From NCBI GenBank assembly GCA_964247055.1, contig OZ176056.1, forward strand, positions 930,001 through 994,000: a stretch of 64,000 nt of DNA, written 5' to 3'. The notes below the pieces were generated by a model. That model was not told the origin of the DNA and did not search any database. It saw nothing but the letters and a program-made list of their open reading frames with translations. The position numbers were made by a program, and so were the translations under genes. Origin of the DNA: Paragordius varius (Eukaryota; Animalia; Nematomorpha). The stretch's first letter is position 1, and every line of letters begins with the position of its first letter. Of this stretch, positions 10,995 through 58,200 are shown piece by piece.

Positions 10995-13900
10995 ATGGCA
11001 GCCAATATTGGTAAAATGTTGCAAAAGGATCAATCCCATTCTCGGAATAATGTTAAATCCTCGGCTCATTTAAATCATCTTTTATTAACCAAAAGTCTGA
11101 GCGTTGAGGTAATTTTATTTCATTTTTTAAAAAAAAATTATATTAAAAATTTTAAAATATCCAAAAATTTGATATATTTTCTTTTACGCACCCAAAATTT
11201 GAGGGTTAAAAACAAGGTTAATTACATAAATATGTTTGGTTGATCCAAAACCAAATATGCGATATAAAAATTTAAATATAAAATTTAAATCATGTCTTTT
11301 AGCTTTAAATTGCTTTATATCAAACATATTTTTAACAAGAAATGAACCGGACTGCTAAGGTATACAGATTTATCTTTGTGACAATTTTTATATAGTTTTT
11401 AACCAAATTATAATTTTTTTTTAAAAAAAGTTATTTATAAATATATATATATAAAATCATAAGTATACTTTTGATATTTGTATAATTGCAAAAACAAATG
11501 CCCTAAACAGCTGGTTATATCATTTACCATTTAATATACCCTTAAAGCCTTTTTAAACATGTGATTTTTATATATTTTAATATCATTGAAAAAATATATA
11601 ATCATAATATAAAATTAACTCTAGATTATATTTTATGATGTCATTATCAAAAACTAAGGCTTAAGTATCGTTTATTAAAAACTGCATCATATTTTTCTAT
11701 ATTCATTCTTAAATCATATGCTTAATGGCATTGGGTTCACACAAATAATTGCTCATAAATCATATTAAAAAGATCATATTTTTAAATATATTTAAAAATA
11801 TCACGGTTTGGGTTTAAAGCTCTGATTAATTTTACACTAGAGATACCTAAAATATAAATAATCCTTGTAAAAAAGTTTTATATAATCCAAAGGGTCAAAG
11901 ATTTTAAAAATAATCAACCCTCTTTAATATATATATATATATATATATGTCAAATATATATTATCTTTTTAAACCTTGTTTTTGTCATTAAAAGCGTTAT
12001 ACCCTAAAAAAGTAATAACCTTACTAAATTTATAGATACGTTAAAAAATTTATACGAATTAGGATTCATATCGAACAACTGGACGAAAACGTAATCTCAT
12101 AAAAGATGCCATGTTTGAAAAAGCATTTCACCATAACTCTCAACAGGAGGGAGAAATGCTCAAGGATATTAACAATAATGACATTTGTCCATCACCAAAT
12201 TTCAAGCAGCTGTCTCTTGAACCTGATTTAACAACAGTAAAGGAATGTAAAACTAAAAGATGTTCGACAAATTCCACCCAATCTCAACGAACAACGGAAG
12301 ATGATTTATACGGATTTGCTTGCAAAGAAAACCACCCGTATTTAAATGTGATGGGAATAAATAAATCAAAAAGTAAACTAGTGTCCAGAAAAATTGAAAT
12401 TACACAACTAAACATAAAAATTAATTTTTTTCAAAGGATTAATTTTTTAAACATAAAATTTTGGTTTTAACGGGAATCAGAGATGCTAATTGATAATATA
12501 ATAATTTTATTGGTTGTGAAAGAAAATATATGTTTCCAAAAAGTAAGGTTATCTTTTGCAAAAAAATATTTGTCCTTATATTTTTACGTTTCCGTATGAT
12601 TTTAATTTTCACATTAACGATTCTCCGTTTTAATTTTGGAAATTTAATTAAAAATATCTAAGAGCGTGTGTAAAACAGTCCCTTTTTTACTTAGGTTACA
12701 ATGAAGAACTTATGGCTCAAGCGTTACCAAATGATGTGTTGAACGGCCATTCTTTTAACACTAAAGCTTACCTAATCCTAATTATCTATGAAATCGAGGA
12801 TATGCTTTCTCCTACCCTAGACACTTTGCTTAAATTATCTAGAGTTTATTTTATTTTTACACTATTTTTACGCATACTTTTTTTATAATAGAAATGGGAT
12901 AGAGTTATTTAGTTAACATTGCTTTTACTTTGTAAAAAAATACATTTATTAAAATTGGCATTTTAGGTATATCGATATGAAATAATTCATATTGATACGC
13001 GAATCTCGACAACCCATTCGAAAGAAGCTGTTGAAACGAAAACCAATCAACCCAAATTGAGTATGGATATTTTGGTTAAAATCCAGTTTACGGACACGCA
13101 ACCAAATAAAAAAGATTTGACGGCACTCATGACATGTCTAACCAAGAAATATGAGGGAAAACTCAAATTTTTAACACCATACCTTCAAATTCCAAATGAA
13201 TACGATTTTCAAACTCAGAACGGTGCAAAAATGCAACACGAAAGCACGGAAGAAAAGACAGATTTGGTTGATGATAAAGGTATTTGATTATTAAAAAAAC
13301 ATGACACCCCAAAACTTGGGAAATTATAAAATTTGTCGCGCAATTACGGATTAAATAATTATTAATATATAAAACTGAATCTTATATATAACATGAAAAT
13401 ATAAAAATCCCAACATATTTTTTATTGGATTCAAAACTTCCTTATTTTATGAAAACCCTAATTTAATTTAGCATTTCTTCCATTGATTAAACTGGTTTGT
13501 TTAAAAAAATTTAGAAATTTGGGTTCCAACTCATCTCAATGATTTAGATTTGTGCAATCACGTCCTAGTAAAGTTTGAACCAGAATTGCATTGTTCTCAT
13601 CCGGTATTTAATTAGTTTTTCTTTTTTAATTTAATTATATTTTTACAGTAAACTTTAGTTTTCAGTTCGTTCATTGAAAACATGTATCAAAATTTGGATA
13701 TAATATAATTTAATTATTTTTACAGTATAAACGCTAAATTATACGGATAAAACGTAAAAATATAAAGACAAATATTTTTTTGAAGAGAACGATGTACTTT
13801 TTTATACTTGTTTTTTTTAAATTAACTCATTGGTTGAAACTGACAGTATGAAATTGAAATGTAAATAGGTGTAATTATATATTCATCTAATAAAAATTAA

Positions 13901-16900
13901 GGTTTAAAAGTAAGGTTATTGTCTTTTGAAAAAAAACTACTTGTCTATATATTTTTACATTTTGTCCGTATAGTCTCAATATTTACTGTAAATAAAAAAC
14001 GAAAACTAAAATAAAAATCTTTTGGATATTGGTTAGGGCTTTCTGGACAAGGAGTACAGGGATCGGCGTGCTAACATAGTAAAAATGGCATTCAAGTATA
14101 AATTGTAAGCATTTTCAATTATTTTCGTATAAAAAATAATTTAAGGTAAATTTAAAATATATTTATTATTGATGATTTTAGCTCTGAAGGTGGTCCCCTA
14201 CCCCGGGTGGATTATTCGCCTCAAGAAACTCAAGCATGGTAAAATTTTTACATTAAAAATTGGAGTTTTAATAAAATATAAAAATTAAAAAAATTTATTA
14301 AAAAAAAGACAACCATACTTTTTCTTACCTAGATTTTTAGCACATAAACTATTTAATGTTTGTCTTGAAAAAAACATGTCTTTTTATTTTTACGTGTTGT
14401 CCGTATAATTTTAATTTTTACTGTACATATCGTAAACTAATTACGTCCATAATAATTAAAAAAATAGGAAAAATATAGTTTGATTTCAACCATTTGTTGT
14501 TTTTTACCCAAACGTTACTGTATTGCCAATTGGTTAACAATAATTCGAATTGTCTAACCTAAAATAATTTAGTGTGTTACCTATTTAACTCAAAAAAATG
14601 ATTAAATTTTAGAAAAACAGAGCATCTTTTGCTGTATAATTTCAATTTTAACTGTATATATATTTTTTTAGATAAATTAATTTAATAAAATTATTTGATT
14701 TGCAGGGGTCTCGTGTATAAAAAATGCAAAGATATGCATAAAAAACATGCTTGCACTGAATACAATAATGTATTTGCCATGTTGGAAAAAGAGGGCATTT
14801 TTCGACCCGATGTTGTTCCTCAACTGGAGGAGCTATCCAAATTTCTTCAAAGTACACACAAATGTTTTTTTGATATAAAAATTTATTTTTAATTTAAATA
14901 AACCTAATATATTAAATTTAATTCAAATCAATAATATGTTTCATTTTGTAACGGGAAGGGTGAAATACCCGATTATTTTGACAAAATATTTTAAAATCTG
15001 ATTTTTTTAATTATGTGATTTTAGCAAATTTTATGAATTTCTAAACACATATTTATTATTTTGGAAAAAACATATAAATTTTTAATATTTTCATAGTTTT
15101 TTTGTGATAATTAAGTTCTATTAAAGACCGAGCGAACCAGAGAACCAAACAAGCAATTAGGCAAATAGGAATCAAAACTATTTGTCTGTAACCTAAAGGC
15201 ATCTTATATGAATATAAAAAGGGATAATCTACTTATATTTTTTTATTTGCACCTTTAGAAAAATCGGGTTTTCGGTTAAGACCTGCAGCTGGACTCCTAA
15301 CTGCAAGAGATTTTTTGGCCAGTTTAGCTTTTAGAGTGTTTCAAGCAACACAATACATGAGACATACGTCAGCCCCTTGGCACACTCCTGAACCGTATAT
15401 AACTAAATTTTTTCGTTATTTTTATATTTTTATCAAAAAATGGGTTATAATTGATACCATTTTGAATAAATAGAATAATATATCCTAAGAAACCCGTAAA
15501 AAGTAAGCTAAAATCCTTTATAGCGAAATAATGGCGACAATGAGAATACGCTTAACAGCTGATTATATTTATTTTTCCTTTTTTTAAATTATTTTGACCA
15601 TTCATCGTTTTTGGCTTAATAATGGGAATCATAGATGTAAATTGATAATACATTCAATTATATTACTATATTGCCATTTTTTGTTTAAAAATATAAAGTT
15701 TCAAAATCTACAGCGTTTTTTTCAACTAATATTTGTCTCTAAATTTTACATTTTGTCCGTATAACTTCAATTTTTACTATGTTAGTGATGTAATTCACGA
15801 AATCCTTGGACACATACCAATGCTTGCAGATCCTGAGTTCGCTCAACTTTCTCAAGAAATAGGTCTGGCTTCCTTAGGAGCCACCGATGAAGAAATTGTC
15901 AAGCTTGCTACTGTAATTACCCTAAAAAAATATTTTAATAACGTTATTTTAGAGAAGGTAACGCGTTTAAATTTGAATAAGTCTCTCTGGGGAATATTTA
16001 AAAATTTGCAAAGTTTTTTCCATATTCCCTAGTCTTTCTGGAAGCGAGCGTTACTTTTACGTTTCACGCAATTTAGTACTTTTAAATAGGATAAAATTAA
16101 TTTACTAAGGTATAAACAGCTGTACATTAATTATGGAAAGTGAGTTTGAAATTTTAGGCAAGTTTATTAGGTTTAGGTTATTTAATAACTATATTTTAAA
16201 TTGGTTAAAACATCCTTTTTTATTAAAAGATTTTTATTTAATCCTAGCTGTATTGGTTTACTGTTGAATTCGGACTATGCAAAGAAAACAATGAAATAAA
16301 GGCATATGGTGCTGGCCTGATGTCATCTTTCGGAGAACTTGAGGTAATCAAAACGATTTTTTACATATTTTATAAATAAAATTTTCATTTTAAATTTATT
16401 TTAATTAAGGATTAAATATCATTATTTACATAAAATAATTAAAAGGATTCCATTATTCCTAGGTTAATTAGAAAGATAAAAATGCTATCTGTAAGATTAA
16501 AAGAATATTATCGAAATCAAAAGCATTTTACATGAATAGATATTGAGTCATAATAATAATTGCGAAACCGTATTTTTCCAAAAAAGCAAGTAAAAACTTA
16601 TTTTAAGGGCTCTGATTTCATTTTTTTTATAAAAAATTTGATCTTTATTTGATTTATAAAGCATGCGCTATCAAATAAACCTCAATTGTTACCATTTGAT
16701 CCAGAAAAAACAGCCATTCAACCTTACCAAGATGAAACGTATCAAGGCGTTTACTTTGTTATGGAAAGCTTTAAAGATGCCAAGGAACAATTATTGTAAA
16801 TTTTTAAATTATATCTTAAATTTGATATTTATTAAAATTTATACAATACTTAACATAAATCATTAAATGTAAACGATTAATATGATAAATAAGAACCATA

Positions 16901-17226
16901 TTTTTAAACCTTTTATCGTTTTATAAAAAATAACTTATTTCATACTTGACAGATGTATATCAAGGTTATATATAGAAAACAAAAATTTAATTTTTTTCAA
17001 TATTCTAGTAATTTATACCATATTCCTTTAAAATTTTCTCTTAAATCTAAAATATAGGAAATATACGACGACCAAACTAAAACGCAATTATGAAGCCACG
17101 TATAATCCCTTTACCAATTCCGTAATTTTTCTGGATGGAAAAGACGGCATTAAATACTTATCTGATCGTATAGCTCATGATACGGTTAAACTCAATTCTG
17201 CCCTCTCAAAATTAATTGTGATTTAA
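10995..17226 (+). CDS. TH: Tyrosine 3-monooxygenase (tyrosine hydroxylase), about 635 aa. Exons: 10995-11108, 12063-12372, 12695-12843, 12967-13279, 13515-13603, 14037-14104, 14182-14238, 14706-14851, 15259-15394, 15786-15912, 16248-16343, 16662-16795, 17058-17226
   Basis: Aromatic amino-acid hydroxylase fold with an ACT-like region and iron ligands HEILGH and VEFG. TH-diagnostic residues are present: RVFQATQY (Q310-equivalent), PWHTPEPD (H323-equivalent), QPYQDETYQ (D425-equivalent), plus [19 protein letters not shown] as in invertebrate TH. The N-terminus TKSLSVE|[19 protein letters not shown] resembles Drosophila pale KKSYSIE|NGYPSRRRSLVDDARFE. All phases are consistent; the exon 2 donor at 12372 is the least certain junction. 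Confidence 0.93.
13723..13988. mobile_element. MITE family B copy (TH intron)
   Basis: TA|CAGT...ACTG|TA with the family core. Confidence 0.78.
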
Positions 17227-17879
17227 ATGGACAAAAAAATTAATTTTGTTTAAAACATTTTAAAGTCTAGTCTATGGAAAAACTTGTATCGATTTTAAAT
17301 TGATTTTCAAACAATTTGAATGCAATACAAAACATTATTTTAATTATTTATTTATTTTTCTCATTAAAAAATTTATTTTTCGTACAAAGTTTTTTTTAAA
17401 GATTTCGACTTTTGTCATTTTTTATATACATTGTGATAGTATTTATCTCTTTTTGTAATATTATATATAGTAAGGTGAAAATGGAATTTAAATTATACAA
17501 TTAAATTTTAAGGAATTGAAAAAAGAAGTTATCTATTTCAATCCAATATATTAATTCATTTTTTACAAACACAATTTTTTTATAATATATAAATATTTAT
17601 TCAAAAATGTTATTTTTATAAATACATATTTATATAATTCAAAATTTATAATTTATTTATTTATATAACAAGCTGCATAAAAAATTGTGCAAAAGCAAAA
17701 TTTTAATACATTGTTTAACAAACAAGCATATAATTAACAAAAAAACAACTGTAACCGTTAAATAAATGCAACTATTATACATTTTGTGTTTAAATAAAAT
17801 TAACAATTTTGCGAACAAATTTGCAAGATATATGGAGATGACTTTGTTTTGATATATAATAAATTTTAACGAAATACTT

Positions 17880-18120
17880 GTAGAAAATATAAGGACACAA
17901 CGTAAAAATACAACAAATATTTCTTTAAAAAGACAACCATACTTTTTTAATATTGATTATTTTAAATATAACTCATTGTTAGAAATGTAAATTAGTAAGA
18001 CAATCAAGTAATTTCACGATTGAATGTTTTTTATAGGATAAATCAAGTTTTAAACAAATATGGTGGTTTTTTAGCAAAAAATATTTGTCTTTATATTTTT
18101 ACGTTTTGTCTGTTTAATTT
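17880..18120. mobile_element. MITE family B copy, degenerate, between the TH and DUF4211 3' ends
   Basis: Family core AAAGACAACCATACTTTTT...AACTCATTGTT...TATTTGTCTTTATATTTTTACGTTTTGTC. Confidence 0.65.
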
Positions 18121-18194
18121 AAATTTATACCATACTTATTAGAGAAAAAAAATTAAAATAAAGCAACCAATATGGTAAAGACAACAATGTAATA

Positions 18195-19699
18195 CTAACA
18201 AATATGTTGTAAGGGTGAGGGTGATTTAGTTTTTTCTATATAAGCCAATGTATAATCCCAAGTTTGCCTAATTTCTTTTAAAGTCTGCAATAAAATATAG
18301 AAAATAAAAAGTTAATATATTTTTTTGGGGGAGATGTTTTTAAGTTTTAAAACTTTTTAATTACCTTTTCAACAAAATTTGGCGGTTCAAAACAACGATC
18401 TAACAAAAAGGAAAAATTGTGCTCTAATTCTGGGTTTTGGACTTTTATTAACATAATCTAAAACAAAAAAATTATTTGCATAAAAAGTGTTACAAAACGC
18501 TTTAAAGACTAATGTTTTTCCTGAAAAATAAAACAGGAATATTTTATTTTATAAAACCTAATAATTAAGTAAAATAGTTTAGTGACTTGTAAAATTAACA
18601 TCTTTATTACTCGTTCGAAAATATCTAAAACGAGATTAACCAAATGAGGCTAGTTTTTCAAAAAATGTATTATACTTTTACTTTTTGTCTAAGACATTCA
18701 ATTTTTACTGGAACAATAAGATTGCGCATAAAAAAGGCATTTAATATTCAATTTTAAAAAAAAAAGTTTACATAAAAGGAGTTTTTCGCTATTAACTAAA
18801 ATGTAAATAAATAATTTTTAGGAAAAAATAAATTAGACAAATAAACATGAGGACAACCATAGTTTAACAACCTTGATAATATAACTTATCGTTTTGAGTT
18901 GCAAAATAACAATAATATTTGTATGGTACAAAGTTCATTTAAGTTATATAAAATAAGTTGTGGCTGTTTTTGTGGTAAAATACTTATTCATAAGTTTTAA
19001 GGTGTATTTGTTTTTATATTGTAATAAAAATCCGTTTTAAACTTATATATGCCACCAATACAAACCAACTTAAATAAACTTTATAAATATTAACCTACTT
19101 ACAAATAAATTAATATTTTAAAAAAAGATGGAAATTTAAATAAATTTTATAGGAATTCAAATTATTATTTAACAGAAACTAACATATGTTGAGCACTTTT
19201 GGTATATTTGAAAGAGTTGATGCCGTATATTGTGATAAACTTGAGCAAGTTCCTGACAAGTAGGACATAAAAAATATTCTACGATTGGCAAGTTTCCGAT
19301 ATTCTGCAATTCTAAGTTGTAAGCTGGGCCAAATAACTCTATGATTGAATAACACTTTGCTTCCTCGCGTTTACAAGCCTGACAAATATGTAACTTCAAA
19401 GAATTTTTTATGTTAATGGTTGAATGCTTCGTTAAACTAATCTTTAATATAATTTGCATTTACAATTAAAGATTTGTCCCAATGTAATCCTTCCATTCTT
19501 GCTATAAGAGGCTTCGTCAATGATTCGATATAAGTTGTAACTTTGGTGTATGAATCATAAAAGTACTCATCTATATTTAATTTTGGTAAAAACCTTTCTC
19601 TGTATTGACCACAACCCAAAATTTTTGGGACAAAGAAGCGCTAAAAAGCACTTGCAAAAAAACTTTCAAATTAACCTCAAAAATATGCTCATAATTCAT
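18195..19699 (-). CDS. DUF4211-domain protein (QSER1/PRR12/CCDC82-like C-terminal domain), 217 aa from the first in-frame ATG; the 5' end may extend further. Exons: 19699-19594, 19570-19464, 19441-19184, 18457-18365, 18284-18195
   Basis: The spliced product reads MNYEHIFEVNLKVFLQVLFSASLSQKFWVVVNTEK|DEYFYDSYTKV...LHWDKSLI|ISLTKHSTINI...CQAC...LFGPAYN...FLCPTC...VYHNIRHQLFQIYQKCSTY|IMLIKVQNPELEH...FVEK|..KEIRQTWDYTLAYIEK. This matches my recall of DUF4211 motifs (DEYF, W, CxxC, G-x-x-YN, YH-x-x-x-H). It needs two micro-introns (19571-19593, 19442-19463) plus ordinary introns of 726 and 80 nt. Confidence 0.78.
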
Positions 19700-20563
19700 A
19701 CATCCCACATCTGACCATTTATCAACACCATTTATATTAATTATTAATATTTAACAGTATGAATACTCGTTTAAATTAAGTTTGTGTTATATTTTAAAGA
19801 ATATTAAATAAAATCAATATAAGTATAGATATATAGCCGATAAGATTTTATATTACCACTCTATACCAAATATTTCTTCATTTTATTTTATACATGTCTT
19901 TATATAAAACTATCATTATAACCCTAAAAGTCTACCCGATTCTCAACGCTACTAGACGGCTGACACTGAACCATCTATATTGGTGTATGGAAGGGCAGCA
20001 AGGGACGTCTTTTGTTGACAGTGGAGACGTGGGTCTAAAACACCTTGATATACCTTAATTACAATTTAAAATAGTCTTGTATCTTAGACGTTAACACTAT
20101 TTTGATTTTTCGATATGACATTTTAAGTTAAGGTGGCTTTATGACTCAGACTTAAGGCTATAAACAAACTAATGTTAAATATCTTTTAAAAAATAATTAA
20201 ACCCTCATTAAATAATTTAGTCACAGTTATTATCTCAAAATCATACAGCTCCAAACCACGATTGACACGAATATGATATTAAGATTGAGATATATTAAAA
20301 TTTCCTGGCAATATGTGTTTGAAAACCTTTCTTAATAATTTTTTCAACCATAACATCCTTGTCTGTTTTATCTCTGATTAAGTGAAAAAAAAATGGCAAG
20401 TTTAAGTTGCGGATATTTATGAAAAAAAAATCTGCATCATACGATAAGGCGAGCAAAAACATTTTTTAAATTTGACCCGGTGCCGAAAAATTGACTTTTT
20501 GCTTTGCGAATGACAGGAAAAATAATAAATGCAATGTTTCTTAAAGCGTTAATTTACATTTAA

Positions 20564-21062
20564 CACTTTGATTCAAATTGGGGTATCTTAATACCCCAGG
20601 CTAAATTTGAGTTAGGATATTTAAAAAACTACTGAAGGAAATGGTCCCAATTTAAAATTATGCTTCTATCTTAATAAAAACTATATAAATATGCCAAAAT
20701 CGTGTCAAAGTATTTCGACGGCATTTTTATTTTACAAAATTTTTGGAAAATATTGTCTTCATTTAATTTTAAGCGTAAAATTAAAAGGCGTCATTTTGTT
20801 TTATTTTTCAATTTTACCATTACACACATGTCATGTTGACTATATTTTTACCTTTCGGTTTTAGCTTAAAATAAGTAATATCAAGTTTTTTTGAATAATT
20901 TTTTTATATATTTCGGTTATTTAATGTTATGTGAGTGCAAAATTTTGCCATAGTTTCGATTGCTTCCATATTTGTTAAAAAATTTAATTTTAAACAGGCT
21001 TGAGGTATTTAACTATCCCAATTTGAATCGACGGACTAAAATAAATGTATTGTATCCAAGTG
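20564..21062. mobile_element. MITE family C (TTAA-flanked, piggyBac-like)
   Basis: TTAA|CACTT...GATTCAAATTGGGGTA...CCCAATTTGAATCGA...AAGTG|TTAA; homologous to 43540-44046 and 46287-46859. Confidence 0.8.
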
Positions 21063-21299
21063 TTAATCCATAATAAACCTATTATTACTTCTCGCATTAA
21101 GCATCTTATAAACCCAAAAAATGGCTGCGAAAAAAGAATGTGGTTTTTACAGTTGTGTGACTTTAGATATGACTAAAAGCGAAGAAAAATTATTTCGATA
21201 TATTAATAATTATTAGAATGTTCGGCTTTAAAGTCACTTTGGGGAAATCCCAAATCTTAAAGTATTATATAGATTATCACCCATAATTTTGTATTTAGC

Positions 21300-21480
21300 T
21301 TTTAAAAGCTTCTTAAGGAATGTTAACTAAAACATTTTTAATTTGGAGTCATTTACATTCGGCAATAAAGTTATTTCCAGCATTCATTACTTTTAGTAAT
21401 CTTTGTTAATAAATATAGCTCCAGGCCTCAAGTATCTCTTTATTATCTTTGGGTTCATGCATAGAGAGAATCTAAACTAA
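21300..21480 (-). mobile_element. Possible Penelope-like element GIY-YIG endonuclease remnant
   Basis: The minus frame reads ILSMHEPKDNKEILEAWSYIY*QRLLKVMNAG, which resembles the PLE C-terminal IL..E....R..LEAW.I.....MN..G pattern. Contains in-frame stops. Confidence 0.3.
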
Positions 21481-22591
21481 ATATTTAATCTTCTAAATAG
21501 ATTTTAAAAAAATTTGGGAATAATTTTTTAATACCATATATTTTAATTATTAGCTATATACGTAATTTCATTGAACATCCATAAAATATATTTCACAAAA
21601 ATTGTAATTGTTTTTTTTATACATAAATATTATTTATTCAAAAGCATCTTTGTATATAATTAAATTTGATATCATTTGTAATTTTTAAGTGGTCAGTATC
21701 CAGTAGTATAAGTGACTTAAAATAAAAGCATTGTATCTAAAATTATTTTGAGAACAAATATGTATTATTTTATTATATTTTTAACTTTAACCATAATTAA
21801 TAGCCAGATATAGTAAAATTTAAATAAATTGCGTGAGTACCATTTTTACCGCCATTTTTTATAATGGGAACTAAAAAAATCTGTTCCCTTATTAATATTA
21901 AATAGGATATCAATAAAGACGGTTTTAATTTCTTTTGTTTTGACATAATCGGTAAGATATTATTATTTTTAAATAACTAAAACGATGATCATCATACATA
22001 TAATTTTTAATTCAAACATCAACAATAAACAAATTTATTAAAATAAATTGAATATTCTAAATAAATAATTCATTGATTTAATATATAAATATAAACCAAA
22101 TTTATAAAAGTTAATATATATAAATGCAGGTGATATAAAGGCGAAAATTGTGTTTTCAAAATTTTCCATATATAAAATAAGATTCAAATTGAAATGAAAG
22201 AGATTATATTAAACTTATTATTTCTGAAGCGCTGTTTCTGATATTTAAAGATTGATTTTTGGGTATAAAATTAGTTTTAGAGGCTTCAATTGACTCGGTA
22301 TTGTAGGTATCTGTTAAATTTTGTGGATTATCTATTTAATAAAATTATATTAACAATAAAAATTATGAGTGAAAAAGAATGTAAAAATTAATAGTAATAA
22401 CTTTTATTATAAAAAAGCGTTTAACTCAGCTATAAAAACTATAGCATATTTTTAGGCATTTATATAAATATATTTTTGGTTGATAAATAGATTCATATTT
22501 AACAAATGGTATTGTTTATATAAAAAATATTTAAAATGTATAAATATGGTTGTCTTTATTAATAAACTAAACAATATTAAAATTCGGGTAT

Positions 22592-25500
22592 TCAAAAAAA
22601 ATTAATACTATAATATTTTGTAAAAATTGTTGAATAACTTGAGATGGAATTAGTAAAAAATCCTTCTCTTTCCAAATACCGAAGTATGCATTGATAAATG
22701 AAAGCGTATTGTTGTTCATTTTGAACCATACCATATCGGAAAAGGCGCATTTCTTTCACTGTACCTAAAAATTAACGTGAAAAAATGCTTTAATAATAAA
22801 TTAGTTTATAATGTAATACAATGCCTATAAGGAATTGCACAAATTAAAAAGTATTTTGATGGCTAACAATTTAAAAGTTATATCCTGGAAATTTTTTAAA
22901 ATAAAATATATTAAAACTAAAAATTTTTCTGTCCCATAATAAATATGGTTAATATGAGGTTGATTGATGGTCGAAATAACATAATTCAATCAATCAAATC
23001 AATTGAGAAAAAATGGCATTTTTATTGCTTTTTAACAAATATAAAATATTTAAAATAAAAAAACACATTAAAAACGTATATTGTTTCAATTAAAACGTAT
23101 AAAAACATTTCGCTAATAATAAAAATTATAATTTATATAAAATAATATCAACTAAAATCGACGGATATTATCAAACAGTTTCAAAAAAAACGAAAATATT
23201 CTACAATCTTACATAACTTACCAAATATATCAATGGATATTTTAGAAAGATAATCCACCGATAGCCCATTTATCAAAGTAAAACTTTGTTGAGTGTTTGA
23301 AAGTAACATATTTTCACTTGAACGATATTGTAAAATAGAGTTTTGACTATTCTTTTTTCCATACAACAAAGTATTACTTGTTAGATTTTGAGAATTATTA
23401 CAATAATTATGATTATTAAAATTTGGTTTTTCAACAAGCAAATCATCCACACTACTGACCCGTATTAAACTGGATGATGATTTTACTGTGTTGTCTAAAA
23501 GGCTAAGTTTGACATTTTGTAATTGTTGCATTATGCGATCAATACATATGAAAGCACCAGTTCGACCTATAAAAAAAGTAATAGATGAAAACGTATATAA
23601 AATATGGAAATATAAAAATATAAATACATTAAAATTCACAAAAGTAATATGACTTTTAATTGCAAAGGTAGGAGCTAATAATAATAATTTCCATATATAA
23701 ATAGATTTATTTTCACTCCAAAGATTGTTGTCTTGATGAGAAAAGGATTTGATTAATATTTCATATAATTAACCATATTTTATAATATCTTAACTAATAG
23801 ATAAAGGATTTTTGTTTAAGTTAATATTTCAAAACTATTTATCAATAAACTTTATTCGAATAGGCTATAAAGAAAAAACATAATAATTTAAAAATTATTT
23901 GACCATGTAGAATTTTTTTCGAAAACGAAATTCCTTAAATAAATAATACTTTGAATGTGCCCTGATTTAAAATTTTAAAGTTCATTACAAAAATAAACGA
24001 CCTTTATTGTTCCATAAGGAAGTTTAGTATATGCCAGATAATAATACCCATAAATTAAAGTATGTTAAGAAATAGAGTAAGTAAAAGACACAATAAGATA
24101 TTAAAACAATTTTTTTTACTCATAACCTTTTTTCTAAATAAACTATAAAAATATACGTATTTTATATACAAATAAGTGTATGTATTACCAAATTAACCCA
24201 AAACAATAATGAGTTATATTTATAAAATTATTAAAGCACATGGTTGCATTATCAAAAAGAATGGTCTTAAAGTTTGTACGACTGCATATTTTACATTTTA
24301 AAGTTTTTACAACTAGATTATAAAACAAAAATATAAATAGGAAATCATTACAAATTTTTTTTTTGCAAAAAAATTAACTCTTTTCAAATTTTTCTAAAAT
24401 AAAATATCTAACTGACCTACACCCGCGGAACAATGTATGACTAAAGGACGCCTCCCGTAAGGCACAATACTGCGGAAATGAACCAAAAAATCCAAAATAG
24501 AATTGGGGTCTGTGGGAACCCCAAAATCTGGCCAAGCCCGGTAATGAAAATGCTTGATTTGTCGCGATTGTGTTCCCTTAATAATCAATTATACATAATA
24601 TATGTGTGTAAAATATAAATATAACATTAAGACCTGAAATCACCATATATTTTGAGTTATATATAATCATAAAAAAGAGCACTTTATTTTACAAGTGATA
24701 TTCAAATATTAATTTCATTTAACAATACAACATTATATGGACAATGTTTAGAGATAAGAATCAGTTTTTCTGGCAACGATAGAATTCGGCATTTTAAAGA
24801 TTGGTAATATTTAACAAAAATAACCAAAATGTTAATTATTTATCCGATAATTTTTAATTATCATATGCCACAAATTAATAAATACATGACTTTTATTGAG
24901 TTTATGTATGACATGTTAGATATATAAATTAATTTTTTGTGATTCTTCGAAATAGATGTGTGACCATAAAAAATAAAAATAAAACAAACCGCAAATTTAG
25001 ATTTATAAATATAAAAATTAATTACCAAAACAAGTTTTAGATCAGTTTGATACCAATCTTCGAAAGATTTTTCCTCTAAAACATTGACTGTAATATCTCC
25101 ATATTGTGTTGAACAATTGTTTCCATTCAACAAATTATTTTGGCAAATTGATTTGTTAACATTTTGATAGGAATCCGGCCAGTATTTTATACATTTATCC
25201 TATATATTTTTTTTAATTAACAGAACTGAAAAAATTGTAAAAATAGGGGTAACTTATAATAATAGACAGTTTTTACTTAAATCATGATTTAAACCTTAAT
25301 TTAGGATATATATACGGAATTGTAAAAGATACCTCATATTTAAAATAAAAGCTTAATAAGCAATTGTATTCAATTTGAATTTTTCTAAAGTAAATTCCAA
25401 GAAAATTATAGTTCAAAAATAGTTAACTCTACTTTTTAAATATTTTATACCAGATTATTACTTTTGAAATCCTCCCCCAAAAAATTAATTTTTTTAAAAA

Positions 25501-49244: not shown

Positions 49245-52200
49245 AGACATATAAAAGGGGGGTTTATAAATGCCACATTTTTAAAAAAAACAAAGGGCTT
49301 TAAAGCATTTTATAGGAAATGTTTTGGACAGTTTTGATATAATAAAATCTATAATTATGCGGTTATATATAAACTATTATTTAAATCAGAAAATTTCTAA
49401 TACGCGACATTCCAAATAGGATCATCTACTTTGCAGTAAATGCTCATAAATTCTTGATAAAATCGATATATTTCTTAATATCTAAGTATGATTGGCAAGA
49501 GCTAGAACAGACATTCTTATGGTTGAAATCTAATAAATTATCATCAATGAATGCCGATATATATCTGAAATTCGGCTCGCGAAGCCATTTTTGTTAAACT
49601 AAAAATATAGAGAGATTTGATATTTAGTCAATTACGAAACCAAAACTATTTAAAAGCTTGGTGTCTGTAGCAGCGTGCATCTAAGATCATATAAAAATCA
49701 ATATTTTCATATATTTGCTATTATATGTCTATTATTGACTTTTGGGCTCCCTGTGCCAAAAATTTGACTCGATTGTAAATTTTACTGTATATAAATTCCT
49801 AACATATCTAATTTATACATTCTACATATAAATTTGTTTAATTATAACATAATACTATAATTTAAAACATGGTTAATACAATTAGTTTACCCGGATATCT
49901 ATTCATGTTTGGTGTCTATTGATTTTACAGTAGAAGCTAATATGTCTCAACAGCTCAAAGGCGAATTAACTGAAGAAATTATGTTTCTTAAACGATTAGA
50001 ACATCAAGTATATCAATAAATATCATAGCTAAAAACCCATTTAGTTTTTGATAATATGTATCCTATTATATCTATAGCTAGATGCCAATTTCGGAACTCA
50101 TTTGGAGAAATATTTAACCGTACGGGTTAATTTTAAGTGAGCCTATTTGATTTATTTTGTATCAAGGGTTAACTTTTATTGAAATTAATGATTATTATTA
50201 GAGGATAATTGTTGTTTTAAATTTAAAAATTTAAGAAATGAAATTATAGAGTTCTAATATGGCGTCAGGAAACCTAAATTTATATATACCATTTACAATT
50301 CAATTAACCCTCGAACAATTCAAATTCACCCTCAAATAAATATGTTTTTTAAGATTAAAAATTACCTATATTTATATATATTTTTAAAAAATAAAATTTT
50401 GTTTAAAATCAAAATAATACTGAAAAAATAATAAATTATGCCATAAAAATATATTTTATATTTATAATAAGATATAGAAGTTCAAACAGAATTTATTTTT
50501 AGAGCGAATTTGCATTGTTCAAGGGGGAATTTGAATTGTTCAAGGGTGATTTTGAACTGTAAATGGCATATATATATTACAATTTGGAGAATCCTTCTTT
50601 TGACTAACATTGTATATTAATCATAATCTTAACCATAAAATTTCAATTTATATTAAAGCAGGAAAGTCTATAAATATATATTCCTACCTGACAAAATAAT
50701 TAATATAAATCACTATTGAAACCGAGACAGTTATTTTGATTTAAAAACCGTCAATCTAAAAATGTTTTGAACCCGTTTTTGAACAATACCGCGCTTGCAA
50801 TCAATCGATTTTTAATTTATGGTTTTATTTTTTTTTCATAGTGAAAGTACAGACCATATGGAATTTCGAATTTTCTTTAATGATCTTTATACTGATCCCA
50901 CTCTCCAATTAAAAACCATGTTTGGAGAGAAATTTAGCATTAAGTTCCATGGGAAAACTATTTTGCCTTTAAACCTTACCATTACCATCATAAAAGGTTA
51001 ATAATATCTCAAAAAACTCTAAATATATTTTAAAAATCCAAATCCCGCTTTTGTATAGTTTATAGGGATTAAAACCGAAATCCGATTTTTAAATCCGTTT
51101 TGATACTAAAAATAGTTTTACAAGTAAAATTTATTTTGTATATCCACATTTTCATAATATTTTAGCCTTTTTGTTTAAAAGACTAAACATAGTAATTCAG
51201 AAGAAAGTAGCATATAAGCCTATTTATATGACTATCTTTTCAGTAATCGCCTATTGAAATATCTAGGGGGGGAAGGAGCAAAAAATTTCGAAAAACAATT
51301 TTAAATTTAGGTTAATAAACATAATGTGTAATATTATTCAATAATTGGATAAAATAAATTTGATTACTGTAAATTAGTATCATTAGATTGTTGGATTCCC
51401 ACATATTGTAACTAATTATTTTTTTTACTGGTTCTTACTAAATATTATATTAATGAGGATATCAGATGTATATTATCAAGATTTGTCCCAACAGAAATAT
51501 TATTTTAACAATTAAATATAAGAGGATATCTATCATTGATTGTGATTTTTACAATAATAAATAAATTGTGCATTTTTATATCAGTTTTTTGGAAGGAGGG
51601 AGGGGTGTGAGGGCGCAAGAATATTTTTTTCAATTTAGTTAGCCATGAACAAAAAAAAGGTTTGGAACCATTGGTCTATTGAAATTGAATCGAATACAAC
51701 ATTAAACTAAAATATAAGTGATATGATGTTATATAATATGCAACAAAACATAACTCTATTTTATATATTACTTTGCTATTCAATGCATACTTATAATACT
51801 TTTCTGTTATTAATATTTTACGTGACATGTTATATACTACGTGACTGTTTTATAAATGCACACTCATCATTCTTAGAAATTTGTATATGTTAATGCACGA
51901 TAAAAATATATAATAAGATCCGTATACATTTCTCGGAATTAAATTTAACCTATATAAACAACAAATTCTTTAAGTCCATTGCATTACTGTGTTTTCCCAT
52001 TATTGTGTTATAATAAATTATACCCAACTGATATTATTTGGCGACGAGAAAAAAAATTTATTCTGCCTAATGGAAAATCCCGGAGATACATCATTTAGTA
52101 ATGCACAAAATCCTCTAAATCGAATAATTCTTGAACCATTTGACGAATGTTACAATTTCAAAAATTATGTCAAGCACATAGAAAGGGTACTCGCGGCATG

Positions 52201-55200
52201 GGATATTCCTGTCACGGATTCCAATATAAAAAATTATTTTTAGCTTTCGGTGGTATTAAAATTTTGAACAAAATTGAAAATATTCTATATCCTGATACCA
52301 TCGAAGATTTGGAATGGCCGGAAATCTATAAAATTGCAGTTCAAATCTATGCCCCAGACAAAAGTCTATGGGTGAATAGATGTGCATTTTATCGTATTCG
52401 TCGTGGTGATAATGAATCTATTCTTTCGTATTTAGAACGTTTGATTTTGGCCGACAATTCTGGATTTGATTCGGACATTTCTAACAAAATCAGGGATATA
52501 TTTTTGATTGGATTAAATCAATCCAGATTAGAAAGAGAACTCCACATAAAATATCCGCTCGGTAAGTTAGATGACAAACCACTGACACTACAAATGTTGG
52601 TCGATATGGCTTTAAGTTTTGAGGAAGCCGATAATCTTCCCTCGCAAATCAATAAGCTTAAAGTGGATAGATCCAGAAATGTAAAACCTCATGGAAGTTT
52701 TAACAAGGGCCATTATAACAATAATAATTATAAAAACAAAAAGAATAATGATGTCCGGGATAATAATGATACTAAAGTAAATTGCCGAAATTGTGGATCA
52801 CTGCATGTGAGAAACAGGTGTCCGGCTTGGGGCAAAACGTGCTACAATTGCAACAAAAATAACCACTTTAGTTCAATGTGCAAAACAAAGTTGGTGAGAA
52901 ATTTAGATCAAATTAGATCTATAAAAGCGGGCACTACCCCTAAAATAAAAGTGAAGATCAACAATAATATGATAGATATAATTTTCGATACCGGTGCTGA
53001 CTGCTGTCTCATAAGTCAACAAATATGGAAGCAGATCGGTAGCCCTAAGTTAACGTGGTCCGATCAAATAACCACGTATGATAATAATAAGATAACAATC
53101 TTAGGGAAAACTATGGTCAACTGTGACGTTGTACAATGAAAAGAAAACGTTACCATGTATCGTAACTAAAAGCAATTTTGATCCAATTTTTGGATTACCT
53201 TGGATAAAAGCGTACAAGCTACCTTTTCCAAAAGGTGTAATCAATAATATAAATTCTAATGAGAAGATGGAGCTTACCAAAATATTTCCAAAACTATTCT
53301 CAAAGGAACTTGGTTGTTACAACGGCAATCCGATCAAAAATTTTTTGACACCGGATGTAAAACCAAAAGCTTTTCCATGTCGTAGAGTTCCTCTACCATT
53401 GCAACCATTGGTAGAAAATGAATTGAATAGATTGTTAGATTTGGGGATTATATAACCAATAGACCCGACAACAACTGAGATATCTTGGGCAACCCCAACG
53501 GTCAACGTGTTAAAATCCAATAGGGAGGCTCGTATCTGCGCCGATTTTCGTGTCACAATCAATCCTTATCTATCAAAAGATTCTCATATCATTCCGACAT
53601 TTGATCAATTATTGGGTAAAATCGGAAATGGACATTCATTTTCAGTTTTGGATCTCAAGGATGCCTACTTACAACTACCGGTTGATAAAGAATGCTCTAA
53701 TATTCTGACAATTACAACACACAGAGGTTACTTTACGTATAAACGATTACCTTTCGGGCTCACAAATGCTCCAATGATATTTCAACAAGTTATGGATCAA
53801 ATTCTAAATGATTGCACAGGCGTTTGTGCTTATCTGGATGATGTTCTGGTAACCGGCAATACAGACACTCAACACAAAGCAAATCTTGAGCATGTGTTGG
53901 AGAAACTTGAACAGGCCGGATTCCGTTTGCAACCAGATAAAATGAAATTCTTCCAGGAAAAAGTATCCTACATGGGATACGAAATATCTAAAAGAGGTAT
54001 TAAGCCAACGGATGAAAAAATCAAGGCTATTTTGAAATGTCCTGTTCCAAAGGACAAAACAACATTACGGTCCTTTTTAGGACTATTAAACTTTCATGAA
54101 AAATTTATTCCAAGATTACATTCAGTCATAAGTGATCTGCACACTTTAACTGGAAACAAAATGCCATGGAAATGGGAGAATATTCATGATAAACAATTTG
54201 CACTGTCAAAACAACTAATAGCAAATTTTGTGGAACTGATTCCGTACATTCCGCAATTGCCATTATTGATTGAGACCGATGCTTCAAACAAAGGTTTGGG
54301 TGCCATCCTTTTTCATGTAACCGAAGATGGCAAGCGGCCAATCTCTTTCGCATCCAGGAAATGTTTAAATTCTGAAAAACATTATTCGACGATCGAAAGA
54401 GAGGCCAAGGCGATTTTGTTCGCGGTAAACAAATTTCACCCTTTAATATATGGGAGATCTTTTAAAATATTGACTGATCATAAACCACTGATTAAATTAT
54501 TTGGGGAAGACCGGAACTTAACCGGAGTCACTAATATAAAATTATTACGTTGGATTTATAAAATATCGGGGTATGATTATACCATTCATTTCAATAAAAG
54601 GGTTCAAAATTTAGCTGATCCCCTATCAAGATTAGCAATTGACGATCCTGAAATGGATGATGATCATGCTGTAACTTAAAAAAATCGGTTCTTATCTATG
54701 AACGATTTGAACATTAATAAAAAAAATGTATTAGTTCAGTCCAATAAGGACCCGGTGATAAAAAAATTTAAAATTGCATTAAATTCCAACAATTGGGACG
54801 ATCCAGATCTAAAATATTATCAACCACATCGCAACGCTATCCAAGCATCGTATGGTTTAGTTTATTTGGAGGATAGACTCATTGTTCCTAATCCATGCAA
54901 AATGAAGTCCTAAACTACTTTCACACTGGACACCCAGGGATAAGTACCATGAAGTCCCTTGCGCGCCACAGTGTATATTGGCCAGACTTGGACCAAAGTA
55001 TTGAATTGCTTGCGAAGACATGTGACTCATGTCAAAGATACAAGCCCAATGTCCAGGAAAATCCAACATACAAATGGAATTTCAACACAGCCGTCTGGGA
55101 AAGAATACACATAGATATTGCTGGTCCCATTGATAATTTCTACTGGCTGGTAACAATTGACAGCTCGTCCAGATGGCTGGAAGTTAATTTATTGAAACAA

Positions 55201-58200
55201 GTTACGAGCAGGTCTGTTTTAAGTTGCTTAGAACAATTGTTTGCGAGATATGGTTTTCCTAAAATGATAGTAAGTGATAATGCATCGTATTTTGTTTCGC
55301 ACGATTTTGATGAAAGGCTTAAACACTTAAACATCAAACATGTTACGTCGAGTCCGTATCATCCACGAACGAATGGGTTGGTAGAAAGATCTATTTACAC
55401 ATTGAAAACTAAATATAAAGCTACGAAGAGGGCTGACATCTCTCCGCAAGAAGCAATGAATACCATTTTGTGGAGCTATCGGCAAGCAATTCATAGTGCA
55501 ACGAGAGCAACACCGTGCTCATTATTCCTAAAAAGAGAATTGTTAGGTCCCTTGTCATGGTTAAAGACAATACAATCAGATTTTATGGATAATACTAGAG
55601 CCCCCTTACGAGAATTAGACGTTGATGATGCTATTCTGATTAAAAATGAACAGCAGAGGGGTGGCGGAAAGAAAAAGTAATTGAAAGAACAGGATTATTA
55701 TCTTACAAGACTGATGACGGTAGCAAAATTCAGCGAAAACACGCCGATCAGCTACAGAAGTCTGTTATGTCACAACCCGCCCTTGACATTGTACCAGAGA
55801 TCCCAGTTACGGAAGCTGTGGAGTCGGAGTGTAACTTGACAGAAGTACAAAGCCGTTATCCTCGCCGGGAACGAAAAGCTCCGGATCGTCTTTCTTATTA
55901 AAGGTGCGAGATATGATATGATGTTATATAATATGCAACAAAACATAAATATATTTTATATATTACGTTGCTATTCAATGCATACTTATAATACTTTACT
56001 GTTATTAATATTTTACGTGACATGTTATATACTACGTGACAAGTTTTAGACTATGTGACTGTTTTATAAATGCACAGTCATCATTCTCAGAAATTTGTAT
56101 ATGTTAATGCACGATAAAAATTTATAATAAGATCCGTATACATTTCTCGGAATTAAATATAACCTATATAAACAACAACTTCTTTAAGTCCATTGCATTA
56201 CTGTGTTTTCCCATTATTGTGTTATAATAAATTATACCCAACTGATATTAATAATGGAATGAGAACCAGAGAATTAAATTTCTTTGAAACCGCCTAAAGA
56301 TTTTGCACAAATAAAAATTATTTGAATGTACAAAATCTGCCATCTAATTTGTCATATTATTTTATATATTGCAGGCACATGTTTCCATAGGGATCATGAA
56401 GGTGTCATTGACATTAATATATCATCCAAAGTTCTTCCCGCCCTTCTCATAATATTATCGGCATATTTTTGGTCTCGACACCATACAAACAACAAAGGTT
56501 TACAATTTTTGAAATCGTTTTAAAATCGATAAAAATAATTTTTTTTTAAATTTTTTTTATAACATTATTGAAAGATTATAATTTTAAATGATTACTGATA
56601 AAAGATTATAAAAAAAGTAAAGAATTACGCACGCATTTTTATATACAAATATTATAAAATAAATGGCAAAAACGCGTATAAATGATTCTTTCAAAAATTA
56701 ATAATTAATTTATTTAATAAATATCAATTTTCGGTTATATTAATATTTGTATCACCTTTTTCAGGATTAAAAAAAATTTAAAACGAATCAAAAAAAATAT
56801 AAAATCCTGAAAAAGGTTACACAAAAATAGATTTTTATTAAAAATAAATTAACTATTTTAAAAATCATTCGCGTTTTTGCCATTTATTTTAACGAGAGAA
56901 AAAATTATGTTTTTTAGTATTAAAGGGTCCCTATCCAATAACAATACCGTGGAAGTACCCTCCAACCCAAACTACCATTTGGAACATTCAAAAACGCAAA
57001 ATTTGCCCCACACATTTCTATGTTCATATACCCAAAGATTTATTTAACGTTGCACGCATGCTTAACCATGTAGGCTATCTGCCTAAATCGTATGAGGGCG
57101 GTCGTTTAAACGATATGGAATTGGTTTAGATTATAATAAACCTCAAATATTCTCAACCTAAAAATAAATTGTGTGTGTTTGGGCAGCTAATATAATTCAT
57201 ACGACATAGTTTATTATTTTCAGCATTATATTAATTTTAAACAGAATTTCCCATTTCATAAATATTAAAAATAAAGGTAATTTTTAACGCAGAAAAAACA
57301 TAATTTATTTTAGGGTGAATTTGAGTTTGAGTAGTTTAAGGTATTATTTGAACTGTAAATGGTGTATAATTGTACTCAGAAAATCTTATTAATTGTATAC
57401 TATACATATTACAGTAAAAATTCAAATGATACAAACAAAATGTTAAAAAAAGGCCTATGTTAATAAGATATTTAATTGGTTTTCCTTATGAAAAAATTGT
57501 TCTTTGAAAAATCTTTTTGAACCTTACTACAGTAAAAATTGAAAAAAGTCGGAACATTTTTTTAAACTTATTTTGAAATAAACTCACTGTTGCAGAATGA
57601 ATTAGAGATGTTAATTGGTAACACAATCCACGTATTTATTGTAACAACTGTAATTAAATAGGTTATCTGGGTAAAAAACACGGTTATAAAGTATAGATAC
57701 TGGAAAAAAAATTGACTTTTAATTTTTACGTTTTTTGTTTGTATAATTTCAATTTTTACTGTACATAATAGATTCAAAATTTTTTGGATTACTTCTATAA
57801 TCATTACTATGATTTTGATTTTGAGTATCAGTATGATTGGTCTTTTGTATACAAAGGCGTGCGTAACTTAAGCCAAAGTGAGACAGTTAGATATGCTTGG
57901 AAAAAGGAAGAAAAAATATATGATACCTCACCATGGTATGAATCCAAAGATTCTGCTGCATTCCAAAGGAAGAATTCCCAATTACAATATGTAATTTTGA
58001 AATTTTTCATAATTGTTAATAATTTTGGACCCTAATAAATCAATAATTTTTAAAATAAGGTTTTTTTATGACTAAAAAATTGGATAGATATATTAGCAAT
58101 CTTGTAGATAATGTATCGCCCCTTGAACAAAGCTGGTCATCGAAGCTTAATTTAATTTTATAAATTTCTATATTCTGAAGTTGCAGAAATGCAATATTTC

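Follow-up and report, generated by a model that had tools for sequence, protein, structure and literature searches.

The window, by which the whole analysed stretch of 64,000 nt is meant (GC ~23%), contains on its minus strand a CCDC82-like gene with a DUF4211 domain, and the coding sequence of this gene lies in three successive open frames (19750-19580, 19640-19440 and 19459-19172). The preliminary description had proposed that two GT-AG segments of 23 and 22 nt rejoin these frames, and the sequences, positions and joins given there were all reproduced. The first segment, putative micro-intron 1 (GTTTTTACCAAAATTAAATATAG, 19593-19571, minus strand), is 23 nt long, begins with GT and ends with AG, interrupts the frame in phase 1 and has a GC content of 17%. 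The second, putative micro-intron 2 (GTAAATGCAAATTATATTAAAG, 19463-19442, minus strand), has 22 nt, the same GT..AG ends, phase 0 and a GC content of 18%. Read on the minus strand, the 23-nt segment has the in-frame TAA and both segments have the CAAA(A)TTA that had been noticed before.

Around these segments the gene can be modelled as five exons, all on the minus strand. Exon 1 (19594..19699) starts at the first in-frame ATG (19699) and encodes MNYEHIFEVNLKVFLQVLFSASLSQKFWVVVNTEK plus one nucleotide, its frame being open back to 19750. Exon 2 (19464..19570, 107 nt) encodes (D)EYFYDSYTKVTTYIESLTKPLIARMEGLHWDKSLI in a frame that stays open for 67 codons (P ~0.005 at the stop density of the window), while exon 3 (19184..19441, 258 nt) holds the conserved core of DUF4211 (ICQACKREE.., GPAY, YHNIRH, QKC). 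The joins across the two micro segments read NTEK|DEYF (phase 1, with the split codon G|AT) and WDKSLI|ISLTKH (phase 0). Two introns of ordinary length follow: intron 3 (19183-18458, 726 nt, GTTAGT..TTTTAG, phase 0) leads to exon 4 (18365..18457, 93 nt), the counterpart of exon 11 (84 nt) of the homologous gene of Ptychodera flava, and intron 4 (18364-18285, 80 nt, GTAATT..TTGCAG, phase 0) leads to exon 5 (18198..18284), which ends in a TAG stop at 18200-18198. The 726- and 80-nt introns with GT..AG ends and the intact stop behind them agree with what had been described. Excision of both micro-introns together with the two longer introns yields a single 216-codon ORF, which opens with the ATG at 19699 and closes with the TAG at 18200-18198.

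Exon 3 alone matches the Pfam profile DUF4211 (PF13926) with E = 4e-4 over profile positions 93-134, at 20.9 bits against a gathering cut-off of 27. In a HMMER search with the same exon, 1.84 billion representative proteins yielded a single genuine relative (P0002, E = 8.5e-5), annotated as 'coiled-coil domain-containing protein 82-like [Ptychodera flava]' and itself carrying DUF4211 at E = 3.9e-16. The other three matches were repeat-rich or low-complexity proteins without DUF4211 and were rejected as relatives. Word-index searches with P0002 for further DUF4211 homologues returned P0002 alone, and no transcript-derived protein of the gene is present in the library of 1.84 billion proteins.

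Alignment of the spliced protein with this homologue shows colinearity through all three frames. The model matches P0002 residues 255-409 with a BLOSUM62 local score of 142, which 0 of 1000 shuffles reached, and identity is ~25% over 212 residues and 36% in exon 3. Domain order is colinear, and the motifs KVxLxxxF, IK(N/T)SL, ICxxCKRxE, GPxY, YHNxRH and QKC as well as a conserved W are common to both proteins. Exon 1 is colinear with residues 255-287 of the P. flava protein and is weak when taken alone (shuffle p ~0.1), and exon 2 alone shows no significant similarity to P0002 in a shuffle test; exons 1 and 2 taken jointly reach a score of 43 at the expected place of P0002, which 7 of 1000 shuffles attained (p ~0.007). 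A MAFFT alignment of the separate exon pieces to P0002 misplaced pieces and was set aside. The earlier argument from a 'gap-free spacing' at the joins turned out to be overstated: relative to P. flava the model has 6 additional residues before junction 1 and 4 fewer after junction 2, so that spacing cannot tell splicing from read-through.

Compared with the P. flava protein, the model either lacks a 250-residue N-terminal region or carries that region on undetected exons. An AG at 19712-19711 (minus strand) is a possible phase-1 acceptor and lies two residues from the phase-1 intron of P. flava at residue 252.33, which hints at undetected upstream exons. No upstream exon was found. Just upstream of the gene lies a GC-richer element (19770-20163), which is moderately repeated (depth 13,000-40,000, against ~400 for unique DNA) and in which neither ARAGORN nor Rfam found an RNA gene.

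Sequence correctness and the rejoining of frames

Frame changes of this kind could in principle arise if the exon were continuous and single bases had been sequenced or assembled wrongly, an explanation that the short homopolymers (T5, A4) in both segments and the very AT-rich genome would favour. Indel errors at the junctions were looked for in Logan contigs of sequencing run X3, which were assembled separately and cover 19071-19525 and 19496-19756. These contigs reproduce both segments and their flanks exactly, with 0 differences and 0 gaps at a word depth of 342 over micro-intron 1 and 376 over micro-intron 2, a match whose independence is qualified by the possibility that X3 derives from the same sample as the assembly. 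No indel relative to the X3 contigs is listed between 18693 and 21494, and the gene as a whole shows none. With corrections of 1 nt, each site would keep 7-8 additional residues, at positions where introns lie in the orthologue. Because contigs at ~350x match exactly (with X3 possibly being the sample of the assembly), assembly error is removed as an explanation, and what probability it keeps is extremely small. Excision of the segments at the DNA level is likewise not indicated, as the X3 contigs show the unspliced form only.

In composition the micro segments (GC 17-18%) resemble the long introns (19-21%) and differ from the exons (30-33%). Both are rich in A and have CAAA(A)TTA and ATTAAA in common, two examples being too few for a branch-point consensus. 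Neither length is a multiple of three. Retention of micro-intron 1 would bring a stop after six codons, and retention of micro-intron 2 would shift the frame and expose a TAG one codon past the end of the segment. The runs in which searches located the sampled words were all DNA-like. Among RNA-labelled runs under the same species label, none of these words was present, and the RNA-labelled run X6, when compared with this stretch, gave nothing at the DUF4211 gene and three spurious matches elsewhere.

The rejoining of frames was also weighed against chance. Segments of 18-30 nt with GT..AG ends that connect ORFs of 30 codons or more, with no read-through, number 48 on the plus strand and 31 on the minus strand of the window. 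Control pairs in the same scan (TG..GA, GA..TG and AG..GT) range from 37 to 69, TG..GA alone giving 63 on the plus and 56 on the minus strand. Since bridging by GT..AG is no commoner than bridging by control pairs, the rejoining of frames alone carries little weight.

Intron positions compared with Ptychodera flava

The CCDC82-like protein of P. flava was threaded exactly onto its own gene (L001), which gave 12 exons with every intron GT..AG. Its introns include two in phase 1, at residue 252.33 and at residue 287.33 (inside codon 288; ..NNYE|(N)GQY), and five in phase 0, at residues 319 (..AWKPDFM|AIMERC), 344, 379, 411 (..QKCTKK|) and 439. Micro-intron 2 falls in the same column and the same phase 0 as intron 319 (WDKSLI| against WKPDFM|), the W being followed by five residues before the junction in both species. 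Micro-intron 1 is in phase 1 and lies one residue from the phase-1 intron 287.33, with an N-x-E-x motif locally in both proteins. The 726-nt intron shares column and phase with intron 411 (QKCSTY| against QKCTKK|, that is QKC and three further residues in both), and the 80-nt intron shares column and phase with intron 439 in a BLOSUM45 alignment. All four introns of the hairworm gene correspond to P. flava introns in order and phase, three of the four in the identical column, in a comparison that uses one homologue of ~25-36% identity and an alignment that is indel-rich near junction 1.

The exons between these introns correspond as well. Exon 2 is the equivalent of P. flava exon 7, which has 95 nt and runs from phase 1 to phase 0, and exon 3 (19441-19184) is the equivalent of P. 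flava exons 8-10 in fused form (L001 8972-10612), introns 344 and 379 being absent here. These two introns have been lost, so that the gene would combine intron loss with intron shrinkage.

For a random frameshift site, the chance of an exact match to one of ~7 intron sites among ~636 positions is p ~0.01, and that of a match within one codon in the same phase is p ~0.03. For both micro segments jointly the value is p ~1e-3 or less. This bears directly on the possibility of a decaying pseudogene, in which two small indel lesions would separate the frames and the GT..AG ends would be coincidental: both lesions would have had to hit ancestral intron sites, or come within one codon of them, and in the right phase as well. 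Such decay would be in keeping with the commonness of short ORF-bridging GT..AG segments, which in this AT-rich window equals that of control pairs, and also with the absence of detected expression (X6 being without a match at the gene) and of any close relative of the gene from the protein libraries searched. By spacing alone, read-through (+3 residues after the W) and splicing (-4) agree with P. flava about equally well. However, the rest of the 216-codon model is free of stops despite ~7.5% stop codons per codon in the window, both long introns retain canonical GT..AG ends at conserved positions, and none of the conserved Cys/His and KR motifs is disrupted. A pseudogene is thus quite improbable, and the earlier impression that the gene does not look like one is borne out by the intron positions, the stop-free frame and the intact motifs.

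The conservation of intron positions and phases with P. flava is the decisive evidence, and because of it both segments are read as real ultra-short introns. The 23- and 22-nt segments are, with good confidence, true U2-type GT-AG spliceosomal introns that would have shrunk to near-minimal length at ancestral positions in a functional CCDC82-like (DUF4211) gene. Judged from sequence, the proposal of genuine ultra-short introns beside ordinary ones is therefore upheld, being supported by the P. flava positions and phases and by the exact confirmation of the DNA.

Even for real introns the boundaries might differ from those modelled. At junction 1, 22 GT..AG choices restore the frame, including a second one of 23 nt (19663-19641) and three of 44-50 nt, and at junction 2 the donor at 19463 can also be combined with acceptor 19427 for an intron of 37 nt. 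An alternative model would use acceptor 19427 at junction 2 or an intron of 44-50 nt at junction 1 (donor 19609, 19612 or 19615, acceptor 19566). All of these choices restore the frame; the 44-50-nt options bring the spacing of exons 1 and 2 nearer to that of P. flava (69-71 against 72 residues), and the 37-nt option keeps the same conserved donor position. Against them, the 44-50-nt options are in phase 0, whereas the P. flava intron there is in phase 1, and the 37-nt option passes over two upstream AGs and drops 5 more residues where the model is already 4 shorter than P. flava. The donor at 19463 is, in addition, the sole GT that is usable if the conserved W of exon 2 is kept, and since every model that keeps the W needs it, the intron at junction 2 stays below 40 nt either way. 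Boundaries of this kind are unlikely, and the 23- and 22-nt introns are preferred.

Two other arrangements were considered and rejected. The second 23-nt GT..AG segment (19663-19641, minus strand, GTTTTTTTGCAAGTGCTTTTTAG) lies inside exon 1 and also joins the frames free of stops, yet its phase is 0, none of the P. flava introns corresponds to it and its fit to the homologue is poorer; it probably represents a cryptic site or a fortuitous resemblance. Skipping of exon 2 by means of a single intron of 168-174 nt would leave the domain ~35 residues short of that in P0002.

With the 23- and 22-nt introns, the course of events would be as follows. Introns at ancestral positions would have shrunk to near-minimal length, and splicing of the pre-mRNA would create the junctions 19594/19570 and 19464/19441 and would also remove the 726-nt and 80-nt introns. 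The predicted product would have ~216 residues, and its CxxCKRxE, GPxY, YHNxRH and QKC motifs match those of the hemichordate orthologue.

Intron lengths and repeats across the window

Three neighbouring genes, each with confirmed identity, were traced for comparison: the 3' part of COPB1 (3.7-8 kb, plus strand), an aromatic amino-acid hydroxylase gene (13.5-17.2 kb, plus strand) and the phosphatase domain of a receptor tyrosine phosphatase (23-27 kb, minus strand). A search of these three for micro-introns found none, all introns traced there being longer than 100 nt. The minimum of 70 nt that had been given for other introns of the window holds in these three genes. The suggested bimodality of intron lengths also fits this window, with lengths of 22-23 nt on one side and of at least 80 nt on the other and nothing between them among the traced introns.

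The hydroxylase gene (13500-17230, plus strand) is phenylalanine-hydroxylase-like (Biopterin_H) and has at least eight long introns. The FHCTQY(I/V)RH motif of hydroxylases is usually invariant, and it reads FQATQYMRH here, a sign of a fast-evolving lineage.

Repeats of several kinds occupy the window. A very high-copy short interspersed repeat is found at 17900-18130 and 20560-21066, with related copies at ~12547-12630, 13930-13992, 14341-14475 and 15730-15790; the copies have a translatable core in common, and they lie in many of the hydroxylase introns and adjoin the DUF4211 gene. Its X3 word depth exceeds 1e6 against ~400-700 for unique DNA, which corresponds to thousands of copies. A Ty3/gypsy retrotransposon at 52147-55680 (plus strand, 35-37% GC) encodes a gag zinc knuckle, protease, RT, RNase H and integrase, in a frame split over four ORFs. 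Its RT is best matched by a filarial nematode protein (52%), by Thelohanellus kitauei (47%), and by Trichuris, fish and turtle copies. Scans of the window for Rfam families and for tRNAs gave no match.

In two further runs (X5 and X11), which bear the labels of two other organisms, there are contigs of depth 2-5 that match the window at 17800-23700 without a difference. This pattern fits a parasite or epibiont in host samples, or carry-over between samples, and not a related species. As the DNA is identical to the window and does not come from diverged relatives, these runs yield no substitution pattern.

Probable ultra-short introns in the hairworm and their known counterparts

Animal introns of less than 30 nt were long considered impossible. 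As a kind, ultra-short introns are already known in animals, where lengths of 20-27 nt have been documented (PMC13644364; PMC6543705); the novelty appears to lie in the lineage and in the presence of both tiny and long introns within a single gene. More tentatively, spliceosomal introns of 21-25 nt may form a separate class in the hairworm genome, occupying ancestral positions beside long repeat-filled introns and clustering in certain genes or in the 5' parts of genes. If this were true, it would represent a third independent animal origin of introns below 30 nt and the first clearly bimodal architecture. Tiny and ordinary introns within one gene, in what is probably an ecdysozoan genome, would show that one spliceosome copes with both extremes, and would provide a natural system for studying the determinants of minimal intron length and the recognition of tiny introns.

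There would also be practical consequences. Annotation and completeness tools with a minimum intron of 30-60 nt will break or miss such genes, and claims of gene loss for the lineage would therefore need rechecking. A 'rampant loss' of universal genes has been reported for hairworms; if the intron class is real, gene finders and BUSCO-type searches cannot model its members, and part of that loss would be an annotation artefact. For orientation, the genome of the hairworm Gordionus has 288 Mb, 26.9% GC and a mitogenome of 15,085 bp (10.1101/2023.06.26.546503). A search of the openly accessible literature found no report of micro-introns in Nematomorpha.

The closest parallels come from two animal groups, the only ones for which the searched literature documents introns below 30 nt (PMC13644364). 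In dicyemids (Dicyema japonicum and Dicyema sp.), GT-AG introns of ~20-30 nt with a median of 27 nt occur at conserved exon/intron positions, about two thirds of the introns are below 30 nt, and the mean is 38 nt (PMC6543705; PMC6736024; PMC13644364). The hairworm segments belong to the same GT-AG class of ~20-30 nt at conserved positions in an animal lineage. Micro-introns are the majority in dicyemids, whereas here nearly all traced introns exceed 100 nt and micro-introns are seen in the DUF4211 gene only.

In the myxobolid myxozoans Henneguya salminicola, Thelohanellus kitauei and Myxobolus rasmusseni, introns have medians of 22-27 nt and reduced splice signals, their positions are conserved with respect to those of other animals and some are longer than 100 nt, and A residues upstream of the AG have been proposed as the branch site (PMC13644364). 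The length class, the conserved positions and the coexistence with long introns are shared with the hairworm gene. Tiny introns are, however, the majority class in myxobolids, in compact genomes of 75-200 Mb, while here they form a local minority among long repeat-filled introns. A survey of 51 animal genomes listed no introns below 30 nt outside myxobolids and dicyemids (PMC13644364). In base composition, the window (~23% GC) lies below both D. japonicum (36.7%) and H. salminicola (29%) (PMC6736024; PMC13644364). With this GC content and its mostly long introns, it is unlike both groups.

Outside animals, ciliates and chlorarachniophyte nucleomorphs likewise have tiny GT..AG introns, of 15-25 nt. 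These are unicellular systems in which essentially all introns are tiny, and many ciliates, unlike the present case, have altered stop codons. In Paramecium, lengths that are not multiples of three, or in-frame stops, expose retained introns to nonsense-mediated decay. Both hairworm introns are similar in this respect, having non-3n lengths and giving an immediate stop if retained.
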